Source: Diadema antillarum (lineage: Eukaryota). Taken from it: a stretch of DNA of 64,000 nt. The stretch is taken from the NCBI RefSeq assembly GCF_040938485.1, contig NW_027271426.1, positions 1,674,001 to 1,738,000 of the forward strand. The letters run 5' to 3'. Position numbers and translations under genes: made by a program. This document shows positions 36,987 through 59,210 of this stretch, piece by piece; the stretch's first letter is position 1, and every line of letters starts with the position of its first letter. The notes under the pieces were generated by a model. The model ran no database searches. It saw only the letters and a program-made list of their open reading frames with translations, and was not told the origin of the DNA.

Positions 36987-38093
36987 ATGGCACAGTACGA
37001 CAATGTACATGTAGATGTTGCAACGGAAGCGCAACTACTCGACTATGAGCTGACAGGCAGTGACAGTAATACCTTGACAGCTATAACCGTGACACGATCT
37101 TTCCCGTGGTCATGGAACGAAATGATGTGGTCCTGGTACGAGATCTGCGAGTTGGTTACCAGCATCCTCGGCATTTCTGGAAACCTCCTCGTGGTCATCG
37201 TCATCTTCTGTCGTCCATCGCGAGGCCGATCAACGGACATCCTTGTGGGAAACCTGGCGATCGCAGACTTTCTGACGTCGTTGTTCCTCCTTCCGTATCC
37301 TACGGTGAGGACCATGCCGATGTCGTTGGCGGGGTCGCTCTTCTGCAAGTTCATGCGCGGCGATTATTTCATGTGGACGTCGGTCACGGCGTCCATTTAC
37401 GGTCTGCTGACCGTATCGTTGGACCGGTTCCTGGCCGTCGTCTACCCGATCCGCTTCAAGAGGCTCGTCACTCGGGGACGGGTCTCCCTGGTCATCATGT
37501 CTGTGTGGATCTGGGCGGCCCTGTCCATGAGTCCGGTCCTCTTTATCAACAAGGTGGACGGCGCCACTGGAGACTGCATCTTTACCATGCCGAATCGAGA
37601 ACTGGACGTCACTTTCGGGCTGTACACCTTCGCCGTCCAGTTCGCCATCCCGACGGTTACCATGCTATGTTCACAGCTCGCCATCGTCCGATCCCTAAAC
37701 CGCGCCGCTACGAGGTTCAAGACCGGCGACGCCCAGAGGTCGACGGCGTCGTTCCACACAGCTGCCCGTGATCGAGTGCTAACTCTCACCTTTACCATCG
37801 TGCTGATCTACGTACTCTGCTGGTCACCTAACCAGATCGCTTTCCTCGCCTACAACCTCCGGATCATCCCGGCCACGTACCTCTACAGTCCTTTCAACCG
37901 AGTCTCGATCGCCATTGCCTTTTGCAATTCCTGCATCAACCCCTTTCTCTACACCCTCCGCCACCCTCGGTTCCGCGATGCGGTGCGATCGTTCTTTGGG
38001 GGAACCAGCACGAGTACCGCGCCCATCTTTGAGGAGCCAATGAGTCAGAAACCTCGTTCCACCCAAGATGTTTTCACCCTGGATGTTAAGTAG
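36987..38093 (+). CDS. Rhodopsin-like (class A) GPCR, 368 aa, single coding exon; galanin/allatostatin-A-receptor-like orphan
   Basis: Seven hydrophobic segments with class A motifs in order: GN (TM1), LAIAD (TM2), C3.25 in FCKF, DRF, W4.50, ECL2 Cys, FAIP (TM5), CWSP (TM6), NSCINPFLY (TM7) and helix 8 FRDAVRSFF. Preceded by a pyrimidine tract and TAG acceptor ending at 36959. Confidence 0.96.
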   Translation: MAQYDNVHVDVATEAQLLDYELTGSDSNTLTAITVTRSFPWSWNEMMWSWYEICELVTSILGISGNLLVVIVIFCRPSRGRSTDILVGNLAIADFLTSLFLLPYPTVRTMPMSLAGSLFCKFMRGDYFMWTSVTASIYGLLTVSLDRFLAVVYPIRFKRLVTRGRVSLVIMSVWIWAALSMSPVLFINKVDGATGDCIFTMPNRELDVTFGLYTFAVQFAIPTVTMLCSQLAIVRSLNRAATRFKTGDAQRSTASFHTAARDRVLTLTFTIVLIYVLCWSPNQIAFLAYNLRIIPATYLYSPFNRVSIAIAFCNSCINPFLYTLRHPRFRDAVRSFFGGTSTSTAPIFEEPMSQKPRSTQDVFTLDVK

Positions 38094-53622: not shown

Positions 53623-53952
53623 TAGTAGAGAATACCTGCTTGCTTGCTATATGATGTGCAAAATGTCACATTTGGAAGATGACTTTGCTTGAACATACAT
53701 TTCTTGGAACAATAGATTGTTTTGCAGTGTAAAATGTAGCCTAATTCTTCAATTGTCGACTGAGATGAGATTAAAAGATTTTTACATGAAGGAAACTGCA
53801 TTACCGGAGTTCCGTGGGCACTATCCTTTGGTAGGCAGCAATTCCAAGTTGCACAAGTTTTTAGAAGGTGTTGGAGCCTTTTTTATATCAAGCTGGCTGG
53901 CAAGTAGTATCATCCTCTCATCTTTTGTTGTTTTCTGCACAGATTTGAAGTT

Positions 53953-54103
53953 ATGGCGTGTCCATCAAGAGTCACCCCCGATCTCTCCTCGGAGGCAAAA
54001 GATGGGGAGAAGGAATTCAAGGGAGACGAGAAGTTGGGCAAGAAGATGGCTTACCTCCTCAGATATGGAGCCATGAAGGAAGGGCTGTCGGTGAGAGAGG
54101 GAG
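53953..54103 (+). CDS. Tpt1-N/LRR fusion gene, coding exon 1 (MACPSR...DEKLGKKMAYLLRYGAMKEGLSVREG)
   Basis: Acceptor cacag ends at 53942, ATG at 53953, donor GAG|GTGAGT at 54104 (phase 1). The peptide resembles the Tpt1/KptA N-terminal 'LSKxxSxxLRHGAxxxGL' motif. Confidence 0.9.
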
Positions 54104-54988
54104 GTGAGTATTGCAAATATCTGTGGCAGGTACTGATTTAGTTGATCAAGAATTCTTCAAGAAGGCCATTTACCATTGAGATCGTGAAGCAGTTCAACAT
54201 GATTTAGTTTTCAAACAAGCCAACAAAATTTACTACAGTATCCTACAAATGATTTTCTTATCCAGATAAGTTGTTGACATTGAACTAAATTACTTTAACC
54301 AAGATGATAAATGTGTTGACATCAGTTCATAAAACTTTGTTTGCTTGTGTGTTTGTTTGTTTGTTTGTTTGTTTGTTTGTTTGTTTGTTGTAGTTTTTTT
54401 GCTGATATTACATCATAGTGAAATTATATTACACCAGATATAGGCCCATAGCATAAAATCCTTAGTGAAAGAAATCGTGTGTGTGGCTGTCTTCGGCACT
54501 GCTGCTTGACCAAAGTCAGGAAAGAAGGAAGTAGTGTTTTTTTCCTTTCTAATGTGATTATTTATGCGTGTACGAGGGTGAGAGTTCCTTTTGTATCCCC
54601 CCTGCCCAAATCTAAAAGAGAGAGAGAAAAAAAAACTACAACGTATCATACATGGCAGGAAATAATATTTCCAAGTGTGAAGAGTGAGAAAGTTGAAAAA
54701 ATTTGATTGGGTGTTGGATTCTTGGGTCCTAGAATTACAGTAAGGCTTTAAAGGGTCAGGGTCATTTATGGGGGGGGGGGGGGGGGGGAGGTGCTAAAGT
54801 AACTCTTTATATATATACAAGCATACATGCATGTACACATACAGACATATGTGTGTGCTCAGTATGTCTCAGATTACTTTATATACTGCACATTATCAGA
54901 GTGGACGCTAAGATACAACATTGCAATGTGCAGAAGTTGGTTAGACATTGATTACGACTAGCTATAACCATCATCTTCTTGTTCTCAG

Positions 54989-55164
54989 GTTTTGTCAAGC
55001 TGGCGGATTTGATGGAGGTTCCCATGCTGTCACGCTTCTCCGTGGAGGACGTGCTAAAGGAGGTCAAAGGGTCATTGTCCTACCAGGGCAAGAGGCGATT
55101 TGAGTACAAGAGGGAACACAACGAGGTCTTTGTCCGTGCCGCGTACTCCCGGAGACTTGAAAGG
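54989..55164 (+). CDS. Tpt1-N/LRR fusion gene, coding exon 2 (GFVKLADLMEVPML...QGKRRFEY...VFVRAAYSRRLER)
   Basis: Acceptor ttctcag ends at 54988 and the phase-1 join gives GGT (Gly). Donor AGG|GTAAGC at 55165 (phase 0). Matches the Tpt1 'GFV..L', 'KxRF' and 'IRA' motifs. Confidence 0.9.
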
Positions 55165-55193
55165 GTAAGCTTCCCTCACTCAGGGGGAGATGG

Positions 55194-55286
55194 TTAACCC
55201 GTTGAGGATGAGCTGATTTTGCTATAACCCAGGTTTCCCATAGACACCTGCCCGAGTACACTAAGGACTAGTCTTCAACGGGTTAA
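55194..55286. mobile_element. 93-bp piggyBac-like MITE, copy 1 (intron 2)
   Basis: TTAA-CCCGTTGAGGA ... TCTTCAACGGG-TTAA. Confidence 0.85.
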
Positions 55287-56365
55287 GAGATGTGGGATTA
55301 TAATATGCTTCTTTTTCTGTCTGTCTATCTGTCATGGCATACATTCACTTTAGTAGGGACAACCTTTGCCAGGCTTCACTTGGCAGTGCATTGTGGGAAG
55401 GTTCCTTTGTTTTAACATTGTATAAACATTGTCCTGTGACAAATTGTTTTGTGACCCTGTCTTTTGTATAGTGCTTGATCAGAAGGAATACAGTTGAAGT
55501 CTTTGTATTGATTGCTTCTACTTTGCAGAGTCACTCAACAATGCTTAGAATTTTACAAGGAAATTATTTCTCTGATGTAAAAAAAAATGATAATAAAAAT
55601 GATATGTTCACCTGATGAAAGGCAGAGGTGCATCTTCACATCTGTCTCAAAATAAATTTTTGGGACATTGCCTGCTGCAATCACACATTGCTTTGTTCAT
55701 TTTGCATGACAATACACTAACAGACCTTTTTGGGTCACTTAGGATACAATTCACAGATGTCATGTGATGGTAGATTCATTGCCTTCTTTCACCTTAGTGA
55801 TGAAACTAGTGGTGGCGTCTCAAATTTCAGCCAAACGGGATGTGTGATTTCATTGCTTGATTCTGCAATCAAATTTTAGATTCGACGTGGCAAAGATCAG
55901 GATGCAAATGTCACAAAATTTATTTTCTTTAAACATGCACACACACCCCCAACACACACAGAAAAGATATGAAAAGAATTTGTAGATTTCTTACATTCTG
56001 GATATGAGATGAATTTGAAAGTATAAGAGGGCAAGCAAATAAAGATGTAATACAGGTGACTCCCATAATAGCAAGGTCCTCGGGGCGGGATGGTTTATTT
56101 TGTTGTATCAAAACTTTGTTATAGCCAAACATTGAGCTATATAGTTTATAATCATGGTACAACTGTAGATAAATATGGTTGGACCTGAATTTTTGCTTTG
56201 TTGTATTTAAACGAAAGTTTCAGTGTAACTATGTGTTTGTTATAATGAGAGTGAATTGTATGTCGAGTGATTGTCAATTCTGTCCAGCCTGAATCTCTAT
56301 GTAGGAATCTTTCAAGCAGTCTTTAATATCAACCCCCATTTCTGCCCCTATTTATGGTCTTACAG

Positions 56366-56481
56366 AACCCTTACCATGAGGGCACCAGGGTGCCCCGTCT
56401 TCTGGAGCAGTGCCAGGACCAGATTTGCCTGAACATCAAGGACTACTGTCTGGAGGACTGTCCTGATGAATTTCTCATTGG
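56366..56481 (+). CDS. Tpt1-N/LRR fusion gene, coding exon 3 (NPYHEGTRVPRLLEQCQDQICLNIKDYCLEDCPDEFLI)
   Basis: Acceptor tcttacag ends at 56365 (phase 0), donor GG|GTAAAT at 56482 (phase 2). Too short to appear in the ORF track. Resembles the AMN1-like N-terminal 'LLxxC' segment. Confidence 0.85.
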
Positions 56482-56901
56482 GTAAATTTCATTTCATTTT
56501 ATTTTATTTCACATATTTATTTTCATTGTCAATGAAAAAAAATTACAAATCATATCATGCTTATAAAAAATAACAATCAATTTACATATTCTGCATACAT
56601 TTATGCCAAAATATATTACTGCATAATCACAACACAATACAAGTGTTTTGTCAATGATTTTCACTGACAAATGTGCTCGCAGCCAATCAGATGCAAGAAT
56701 TTTAGGAGCTTAAAACAGTTATCAATGACTGACAAGTTTCATGAAATGCTGCCCTTATGCGTACTTTACCATAATTATTGTTTTGGGAGGTTAAAATGGA
56801 GCTGTTTTCATATTCTTTATAACAAAAACCAACTTTGTATGGCAGTGATAATTGAGATGATGGAGTTAAGAGTGGGGTTTTTTTGTGCTTTATGTCCTCA
56901 G

Positions 56902-57118
56902 TGAGCTCCTCCACAGGCTGAAGCGGAAAGGAAAGCTGACGAACAGAGCGCTGGAAAATCTCCTGGGTCCCAACATCCAGACACTCAACCTAGGGGGCGC
57001 CCTTGTCACGCAGAGCGCACCCAAGATAATCGTCCGGCAGTGCCCCAACCTCATGCACCTCAGCCTGAAGGATTGTGGGTATCTTGTCACCGACCATGTC
57101 CTCATCTACCTCATGAAG
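56902..57118 (+). CDS. Tpt1-N/LRR fusion gene, coding exon 4 (ELLHRLKRKGKLTNRALENLLGPNIQTLNL...CPNLMHLSLKDCGYLVTDHVLIYLMK)
   Basis: Acceptor tcctcag ends at 56901 and the phase-2 join gives GGT. Donor AAG|GTTTGT at 57119 (phase 0). Contains two cysteine-containing-type LRRs. Confidence 0.88.
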
Positions 57119-57594
57119 GTTTGTGCCAAAATAGGTTTTTAAGTTTTGGTGGGGCTGGGGGAGGGAGCATTGACCTTTGACCCCACAAACCATGAGCCTC
57201 TTCCCCTGTCCTTGAAAATGACTGCTTTGTTCAGTGAGTAGAGGCTCAAGTGTTGAATATGGAGGACTGACAATATTAGTTACCCCTGCTTGTTCACTTA
57301 ACATGAGAAATATCTACAGTCTGATGCCATATTCTGGTCTGGTGCCAGAGGCCGAATGGAATATGGCACCAAACTGCAGATATGTCCCATATGACATGAG
57401 AACAAGCAGAGCACAATGATTTTATCTTTTATTATAATCTCATCGATAAATTTTTGATGAAAATATGTTAGACCCATAATTCATATTTCAGATATTTTTG
57501 TCTACCTACCACTTGTGCTTTCTTCTCTTTCTTTCCTATAATAAACTAACTACTGCATGCATGTACTGTTAGATAGTACATGTAGTACTAGATT

Positions 57595-57675
57595 TTAACC
57601 CGTTGAGGACAAGTCCCGATCGAGCGTACCCGGGCAAGTGTCTATGGGAAATGCGTGATGTAGCAAAAGCAGCAT
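57595..57675. mobile_element. piggyBac-like MITE, copy 2 (intron 4, truncated, opposite orientation)
   Basis: TTAA-CCCGTTGAGGACAAGTC...GGGCAAGTGTCTATGGGAAA; no right TIR. Confidence 0.7.
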
Positions 57676-58395
57676 GAACAATGCAAAAAATACAATGGGG
57701 ACAATCTGGCCCTCATTCACGTAATATGGGATATATTGCATGGTTGATTGACCACACAGATTACAGAATTCACCATCACTAAAAGATAAACTATCATGTC
57801 TTGGTACGGTTGAAGGCTTGGTGGAAGAACAGCTCAGCCTATTTATGTGTTGATGTTGTCATTGCAGGTGATACAAGTTACGGGGAATGAGAATGCCTCT
57901 ACTGTAGATTTAAACAAAAAAAGGGGGTTGAGATTAACTCATCAAATAACATAATTGCAAGCATATTGTAAACTATATTTTTTTACATCAATATTGATTC
58001 CACAGATATGATTCATTGCTCTTGAGGAAATTTTTTCAAAGATTTGCATGCAAATGAGAGACATGTAAGGCCACGACATCATCGTATCATCCGATTTGCG
58101 TGATTGATCTTGGCCATTTTTAACTAGTGTGGGAAAGCACTAGAACCTTTGTGATTTAAGAATGTTCTTTTTTGTCACTGATGTTTGAGTAACTTTTCCC
58201 ATTCTATTCATTACTTCAAATTCAATCATTAAAGCAATGGAAAATGTGAGTTGACTTTACCTCTTTCTATGCCAAGGATTTTGGACAGTGTGTACAATTC
58301 TGTGTGGGTTTTGTGCCAATTGGCACTGAAAGCTCACTAAGGGTTAATAAACCATCACCAAAACAAAGTTTCTGAAACTTTTATTATCGCCACAG

Positions 58396-58701
58396 AGACT
58401 GCCCCACCTGAAGAGCCTCAACCTGTGCAGCTGCAGCCACCTCACCACCACCTCCCTGCATGTCATTCCCAGGCACCTGCCACACCTGGAGGTCCTGGAC
58501 GTGTCGTGGGTGAGTGGCCTGACCGAGCGGGACATCCTGGCGGTCCTCGAGGGATGCCCCAGCCTCCGGAAGCTGCTCCTCCTGGCGGTCAAGCTCACCT
58601 TGTCCGAGGACACCTGCGTGAAGATGGCGACATTGTGCGCTGAGAGGGGGTTAAAGGTCACCTACTGCAAACAGGATGTGACGATGGTCAACGGCAGTTG
58701 A
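58396..58701 (+). CDS. Tpt1-N/LRR fusion gene, coding exon 5 (RLPHLKSLNLCSCSHLT...PHLEVLDVSW...PSLRKLLL...MVNGS*)
   Basis: Acceptor cacag ends at 58395 (phase 0). Three LRRs, then TGA at 58699-58701. Total CDS 151+176+116+217+306 = 966 nt, giving 321 aa. Confidence 0.9.
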   Translation, partial: RLPHLKSLNLCSCSHLTTTSLHVIPRHLPHLEVLDVSWVSGLTERDILAVLEGCPSLRKLLLLAVKLTLSEDTCVKMATLCAERGLKVTYCKQDVTMVNGS

Positions 58702-59117: not shown

Positions 59118-59210
59118 TTAACCCATTGAAAACTAGTCTCAGGTATACTTGGGCAGGTGTCTATGGGAAACACATGTTATAGCAATATCAGCCTGTCCTC
59201 AATGGGTTAA
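59118..59210. mobile_element. 93-bp piggyBac-like MITE, copy 3 (downstream of the stop codon)
   Basis: TTAA-CCCATTGAAAACTAGTC ... GTCCTCAATGGG-TTAA. Confidence 0.85.

Follow-up and report, generated by a model that had tools for sequence, protein, structure and literature searches.

The question raised by this locus is what a protein might do in which the RNA-binding lobe of the 2'-phosphotransferase Tpt1/KptA (TRPT1 in mammals) is joined to leucine-rich repeats (LRRs) and the catalytic lobe is missing. The gene in question lies at 53953-58701 on the forward strand of a 64,000-nucleotide stretch of the Diadema antillarum genome (RefSeq assembly GCF_040938485.1, contig NW_027271426.1, positions 1,674,001 to 1,738,000), hereafter called the window, whose sequence has 30-47% G+C, microsatellites and masked runs of N, and in whose 64 kb no Rfam family or tRNA was found. 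Its five exons splice into a coding sequence of 966 nt that specifies 321 amino acids and a stop codon. We propose, with a probability of about 0.55, that the product is a non-catalytic reader-adaptor, the Tpt1-type lobe of which would bind a nucleic-acid phosphate while the LRRs recruit proteins; the ligand, the partners and a connection to ubiquitin are the parts of this proposal that we infer.

All introns of the fusion gene run from GT to AG, with pyrimidine-rich acceptors and phases of 1, 0, 2 and 0. An earlier note on this DNA, made from its letters, had described five GT-AG exons with these phases and a 321-residue open reading frame (ORF); all of these are present, as are the peptide strings it quoted, and the exons match those of Diadema setosum. 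The orthologous locus of that species (L001) is collinear with the window over ~13 kb and shares with it all five exons and their splice sites. Projection of the window exons onto L001 reproduces exactly the NCBI protein P0038, to which the window protein is 95.3% identical. The DNA of the two loci is 92-95% identical in the exons, against ~80-84% in introns and flanks and 66-85% in non-coding sequence overall. The ratio of non-synonymous to synonymous substitution rates (dN/dS) between the two species is 0.10 at a dS of 0.24, being 0.06 for residues 1-109 and 0.13 for the rest, and the fusion gene is evidently under purifying selection. The start methionine, which has an in-frame TAG upstream of it at 53905, is found at the same or an equivalent position in all orthologues.

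Contigs of 1.2-1.3 kb from four sequencing runs (three from a less closely related urchin, plus one other) carry an uninterrupted ORF of 315 or 320 residues that includes both halves of the protein. Since these contigs represent transcripts, the two halves are borne on one mRNA in related urchins. The earlier note had asked whether exons 1-2 and exons 3-5 might belong to separate transcripts; what the contigs of related urchins carry is a single ORF across that junction. That the domain boundary falls at an intron of 1.2 kb might lead one to suspect that the fusion is an artefact, joining a fragment of a neighbouring Tpt1 gene to an AMN1-like gene. However, the same architecture recurs in six phyla, the transcript contigs have one ORF across the junction, and the linker that spans it is highly conserved, with Glu108 and His113 invariant; we regard an artefact as scarcely credible. 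Judged from these sequence comparisons, the locus holds a fusion gene and not a chance ORF.

Residues ~25-105 form a genuine Tpt1/KptA RNA lobe. The Pfam, structure-prediction and fold results given here and below were obtained with P0038 as a stand-in for the window protein, the window exons being searched separately. The N-terminal tail of the protein, which is disordered, comes from exon 1, as does helix 1 of the lobe together with Lys30, Arg37 and Tyr38 (L-L-R-Y-G-A motif). Searched alone, exons 1 and 2 match the profile PF01885 (PTS_2-RNA) collinearly, at profile positions 3-27 (E 0.034) and 30-81 (E 0.066) respectively, and P0038 reaches 47 bits where the cut-off is 26. Six full-length members of the family score 29-52 bits, always over just positions 2-85 of the 177 in the profile. 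When 15 N-terminal regions were combined into a profile and compared with the PDB, only Tpt1/KptA structures were matched (E 1.1e-10 to 4e-3), headed by the mouse (7yw2, 1.1e-10), yeast (7yw4, 8e-10) and human (7yw3, 1e-9) proteins and followed by bacterial and archaeal enzymes; exon 2 alone yielded noise only against PDB sequences.

The fold points the same way. In the AlphaFold model of the lobe the confidence score (predicted local distance difference test, pLDDT) is ~90 or higher over residues 30-100, and the order of its elements, helix-strand-helix-helix-hairpin, is that of a winged helix. Foldseek places Tpt1/KptA structures at ranks 1-15, with a root-mean-square deviation (rmsd) of 2.0 Å and 36% identity to human TRPT1 (7yw3) and 1.4 Å and 35% to the mouse protein (7yw2), the first La motif appearing at rank 16. 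A feature search of the Atlas with exon 2 returned PF01885 in 100 of the 100 matches listed, and tblastn with seven canonical Tpt1 proteins matched exon 1 at E 7e-7 to 2e-3. It is animal TRPT1 that the lobe resembles most closely, which suggests that it was copied from an animal TRPT1 gene rather than taken from a microbe.

The residues that the lobe has kept are those with which Tpt1 recognises its substrate. HMMER alignment to Tpt1 of Clostridium thermocellum equates Lys30 with Lys11, Arg37 with Arg18, Tyr38 with His19, Lys85 with Lys66, Arg87 with Arg68 and Tyr103 with Tyr80. In the bacterial enzyme Lys11 contacts the base, Arg18 the 2'- and 3'-phosphates and His19 the 3'-phosphate only, Arg68 contacts the 2'-phosphate and stacks on the base, and the residues aligned to this clamp, Tyr80 included, touch both phosphates and the base (PMC6333775); in Tpt1 the site retained here serves the recognition of the target phosphate (PMC12678800). 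Among 33 members of the family Arg37 is invariant, 32 have Arg87, 31 have Lys30, and all have Tyr or Phe at position 103. Position 38, where Tpt1 has the histidine of its catalytic tetrad, is occupied by Tyr in 32 members; the one exception has His.

The Arg-His-Arg-Arg tetrad is thus incomplete: Arg37 and Arg87 are present, the histidine has become tyrosine, and the fourth arginine belongs, with the H-G-T region, to the NAD+ lobe (PMC10415124), which is absent. Tblastn with the seven canonical Tpt1 proteins found no NAD+ lobe in the 64-kb window or in the 25 kb of L001, its matches being confined to exons 1-2, and the same searches of the window and L001 rule out a hidden NAD+ lobe or alternative exons. 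Because this lobe and the fourth tetrad arginine with it have been lost, no phosphate transfer should be possible, and the fusion protein is evidently not a phosphotransferase, although it keeps most of the phosphate-recognition site. UniRef nevertheless names many members "2'-phosphotransferase" (P0015, P0016, P0036, P0039, P0041 and others), in which PF01885 is matched at positions 1-85 of 177 only. That name and a PF01885 score above the gathering cut-off are what would speak for an active RNA 2'-phosphotransferase; with only the first 85 profile positions matched, the NAD+ lobe missing from protein and locus alike, tyrosine in place of the tetrad histidine and the fourth arginine in that missing lobe, we give that reading practically no weight. 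The UniRef name is a propagated mis-annotation, and a wrong one because the catalytic lobe is absent.

In place of that lobe, residues ~117-321 form an AMN1-like three-helix cap and about six cysteine-containing LRRs. The LRRs were already recognisable from exon 5 alone, which gives LRR matches in Pfam (LRR_At5g56370 at 1.2e-5), and the family profile finds FBXL2 (1e-56), FBXL17 (5e-33), TIR1, KDM2B, SKP2 and Rad7 in the PDB. The full AlphaFold model of P0038 has a pLDDT of 81.8 and shows six beta rungs, at residues 174-176 and 199-201, which fall in exon 4, and at 226-228, 252-254, 278-284 and 306-311, which fall in exon 5. Among Swiss-Prot AlphaFold models, ranks 1-5 are all taken by AMN1 homologues (rat, human, mouse and zebrafish; E 1.4e-10 to 2.3e-9), model residues 115-311 spanning residues 5-257 of AMN1 and so nearly the whole of it; the alignments start at model residue 115-120 and at AMN1 residue 5-10. 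In a comparison of language-model features of the C-terminal part, AMN1 clusters rank second and third, right behind the family's own mollusc cluster. Against solved structures VIA-align puts Rad7 first (5zb2, a crystal structure of its complex with Elongin C), with a Z score of 17.7 and an rmsd of 2.4 Å over 167 residues. The domain assignments of the earlier note, namely a Tpt1/KptA RNA lobe at residues ~25-105, a missing NAD+ lobe with an LRR scaffold in its place and C-terminal repeats of AMN1/FBXL type, agree with the PF01885 score and its restriction to positions 2-85, with the PDB profile matches and the first 15 Foldseek ranks, with tblastn matches that lack the C-lobe, and with the AMN1 structural match and feature ranking. 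Of its five repeats the type stands, and the number is better given as about six including the C-terminal cap. Its suggestion that recognition of RNA or of a 2'-phosphate could be coupled to ubiquitylation is more tentative, the protein showing no detectable F-box and, of possible ligase motifs, only one that resembles a BC box.

Automatic names such as fbxl-1-like and FBXL13-like would make these proteins F-box/LRR substrate receptors of Skp1-cullin-F-box (SCF) ligases, and the strength of the FBXL2 and FBXL17 matches shows that the repeats are indeed of FBXL type. However, six members gave no match to PF00646 or PF12937 with an E value of 0.01 or lower, although true FBXL matches in the same searches do carry F-box domains, and in structural alignments the cap comes behind the F-box of known receptors, model residue 105 with FBXL2 residue 56 and residue 109 with SKP2 residue 142. 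We consider an SCF receptor highly improbable.

Between the two modules lie a conserved linker and a helix that may bear on the choice of partners. The linker, R-x-E-R-N-P-Y-H-E-G-T (residues 106-116), spans the junction of exons 2 and 3 and is among the most conserved segments of the protein, Glu108 and His113 being found in 33 of 33 members. The first helix of the cap (model helix 120-130), encoded by exon 3, carries Leu121-x3-Cys125-x3-Ile129 and so resembles the BC box of cullin-2/5 receptors (SOCS/VHL box), for which the pattern compared was [S/T/A/P]-L-x3-[C/S/A]-x3-[V/I/L/A]. Leu121 is present in 32 of the 33 members; position 125 is Cys in 27 and Cys, Ala or Ser in 30 (Thr in two, Gly in one), and position 129 is Val, Ile or Leu in all. 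The residue that precedes Leu121 is Thr in 13, the mollusc-type sequences, which gives the canonical form, and otherwise Arg (18) or Lys (2). In Rad7 the BC box is functional through Leu168 and Cys172 (PMC4551923); it stands a few dozen residues before the LRRs, and the distance to the BC-box-like helix is similar in the fusion protein. The Phe/Cys-Pro-Asp-Glu-Phe segment bears a loose resemblance only to a Cul2 box. Taken together these features make a link to a ubiquitin ligase through the BC-box-like helix suggestive only.

On the reader-adaptor proposal the Tpt1-derived lobe would bind a phosphate-bearing feature of a nucleic acid, candidates for which are an internal 2'-phosphate of RNA accompanied by the adjacent 3'-phosphate, or an end that bears a 5'-phosphate. 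Protein partners would then be recruited by the LRR solenoid, among them possibly an Elongin C/cullin ligase by way of the BC-box-like helix. Amphioxus is known to have a 5'-3' RNA ligase of yeast type, an enzyme that leaves a 2'-phosphate where it joins the ends (PMC3400036), and a 2'-phosphate ligand is therefore plausible in at least one lineage that carries the fusion gene. The strongest form of the idea, a dedicated reader of the RNA 2'-phosphate, or of another phosphate mark of Tpt1 type, that is coupled through the BC-box-like helix and the LRRs to an Elongin C/cullin ubiquitin ligase, appears doubtful to us at present.

Several observations weigh against the proposal. Position 85 is not conserved among the 33 members, and position 29 is Ser in 14 and Gly in 13, a change from Ser to Gly in ~40%; with the replacement of histidine by tyrosine at position 38 these differences could mean that the lobe no longer binds the ligand of Tpt1, and in TRPT1 the equivalent His41 is essential for both activities (PMC10415124), although the corresponding His19 of C. 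thermocellum Tpt1 touches just the 3'-phosphate. The linker is predicted with low confidence in the model. As regards the partners, the BC-box pattern spans few residues and is degenerate, and the conservation of its helix may reflect nothing more than a structural role in capping the solenoid; in the VIA-align comparison Rad7 is matched from model residue 141 onwards, so that this helix is excluded, and our search found no publication that links AMN1 to Elongin or a cullin.

According to the main rival, the lobe taken from Tpt1 now serves solely as a winged helix that binds proteins or has a structural part to play, within a protein of AMN1-like role that has no nucleic-acid ligand. Winged helices often bind proteins, the catalytic histidine has been replaced, and the AMN1 proteins, to which the larger half is related more closely than to any other named family, manage without such a lobe. 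Yet the invariant or nearly invariant positions of the lobe are precisely the basic residues of the clamp (Arg37, Arg87 and Lys30), and its dN/dS is the lower of the two halves, at 0.06, where a change in the class of ligand would be expected to relax the clamp positions. We regard this rival as possible but on the unlikely side, and favour a reader-adaptor that still engages a nucleic-acid phosphate.

The same architecture, with a length of 305-340 residues, occurs in six phyla. When exon 2 by itself was compared exhaustively by HMMER with 1.84 billion representatives, 30 relatives emerged, several of them 305-335 residues long with the same layout. The members come from sea urchins, starfish and a brittle star, three hemichordates, two annelids, four records of Branchiostoma from three species and one hybrid, bivalves, a chiton, a land snail and bdelloid rotifers; vertebrates, arthropods, nematodes and cnidarians gave no matches in these searches, which cannot prove absence. 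In a maximum-likelihood tree of 33 members the echinoderms, hemichordates, cephalochordates, molluscs and rotifers each form one group, and the deuterostomes form one clade apart from the mollusc clade. This is consistent with a gene that was present in an early bilaterian, was passed down vertically and was later lost in some lineages. Exon 2 ends in phase 0, exactly on the domain boundary, and such a phase-0 junction of exons 2 and 3 is as would be expected if the fusion had arisen by exon shuffling.

Members are entered in databases as "uncharacterized protein", "F-box/LRR-repeat protein fbxl-1-like", FBXL13-like or UniRef "2'-phosphotransferase", and a literature search found no publication on the family or on a Tpt1/KptA-LRR architecture. 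The novelty that the earlier note had tentatively claimed therefore holds as far as papers on the architecture go and does not extend to the sequences, which are already databased under automatic names for dozens of invertebrates. The family is best classed as an uncharacterised combination of two known kinds of module. In one record from the hybrid Branchiostoma floridae x B. japonicum (P0018, 487 residues) the segment of cap and first LRR occurs four times in tandem, which may be an assembly or annotation artefact in a hybrid genome or a tandem duplication of exons.

The exons and other features of the window are collected in the table. The acceptor listed upstream of the ATG is read from the sequence, and an intron in the 5' untranslated region is what it would imply. 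The transposon-like copies belong to a miniature element of ~95 nt with TTAA flanks and 11-nt terminal inverted repeats that start with CCC, resembling piggyBac ends; the copy in intron 2 is present at the orthologous site in D. setosum (L001 11202-11294). Upstream of the orthologue, L001 103-5000 is a tandem array with a period of ~269 bp, seen as periodic weak tblastn matches, and the alignment of the window with L001 starts only at L001 position 5069.

Table. Positions of the fusion gene exons and of other features in the window
Feature	Position	Strand	Content
Rhodopsin-type G-protein-coupled receptor ORF	36987-38093	+	Intronless, 368 residues; Pfam 7tm_1 E 4e-42; ~16 kb upstream of the fusion gene
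Possible 3' splice acceptor	53933-53942	+	Pyrimidine run then CAG, 10 nt upstream of the ATG
Exon 1	53953-54103	+	Residues 1-50 and first base of codon 51; start codon, GT donor
Exon 2	54989-55164	+	Residues 51-109; remainder of the winged-helix RNA lobe, with Lys85, Arg87, Arg100 and Tyr103
Linker (exons 2 and 3)	55156-55164 and 56366-56386	+	Residues 106-116
Transposon-like copy	55194-55288		Intron 2
Exon 3	56366-56481	+	Residues 110-148; linker N-P-Y-H-E-G-T, first cap helix and P-D-E-F segment; splice sites
Exon 4	56902-57118	+	Residues 148-220; cap helices 2-3 and first two LRRs; splice sites
Transposon-like copy	57626-57651		Intron 4, partial
Exon 5	58396-58701	+	Residues 221-321 and TGA stop; remaining cysteine-containing LRRs and C-terminal cap
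Transposon-like copy	59146-59210		Downstream of the stop

Why animals and bacteria keep Tpt1-type enzymes when they lack a tRNA ligase of yeast type is posed as an open question in PMC6573784. Here the family presents a conserved and selected, non-catalytic copy of the phosphate-recognising lobe alone, tethered to a protein-recruiting scaffold, and this suggests that in many invertebrates the ligand of Tpt1, whether a 2'-phosphate of RNA or the phosphorylated end of a nucleic acid, is sensed as well as removed. It also offers a convenient handle for tests, comprising one small domain, two arginines and one candidate class of ligand, while recognition of the family corrects the "2'-phosphotransferase" mis-annotation and may help to explain the AMN1 proteins, which are poorly understood. 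Were a cullin-coupled reader to exist, it would be a substrate receptor guided by a modification of RNA, and 2'-phosphorylated RNA would be a physiological signal in animals that splice their tRNA mainly through RTCB.

Comparison with known systems places the protein between several families. With Tpt1/KptA/TRPT1 (7yw2, 7yw3, 7yw4, 6e3a and 9ld4) it shares the winged-helix RNA lobe, which is 35-36% identical to that of mammalian TRPT1 and superposes on it at 1.4-2.0 Å, as well as the Lys, Arg, Arg phosphate clamp and the equivalent of Tyr80; it differs in having no NAD+/ADP-ribosyltransferase lobe and a tyrosine for the tetrad histidine, so that neither step of the Tpt1 reaction would be possible. 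The La motif has its fold class in common with the Tpt1 RNA lobe (PMC6333775) and supplies the next Foldseek matches, although with much weaker scores, and the clamp residues of Tpt1 are not found in La. FBXL2, FBXL17 and SKP2 of the SCF ligases have LRRs of the same type, whereas the fusion protein is without a detectable F-box. Rad7/Rhp7 (5zb2), which contributes LRRs and a BC box (SOCS box) to the Elongin C-Cul3 repair ligase of yeast, is the top match among solved structures and has a Leu-x3-Cys BC box, but it lacks a Tpt1 lobe, its structural alignment does not take in the BC-box helix, and the Elongin C link of the fusion protein is putative. AMN1 (human Q8IY45, zebrafish Q0P4D1 and the yeast Amn1 family) shares the helical cap, the cysteine-containing LRRs and the lack of an F-box; at only 21-23% identity, it is distinguished from the fusion protein by a larger number of repeats and by having no Tpt1 lobe at its N-terminus.

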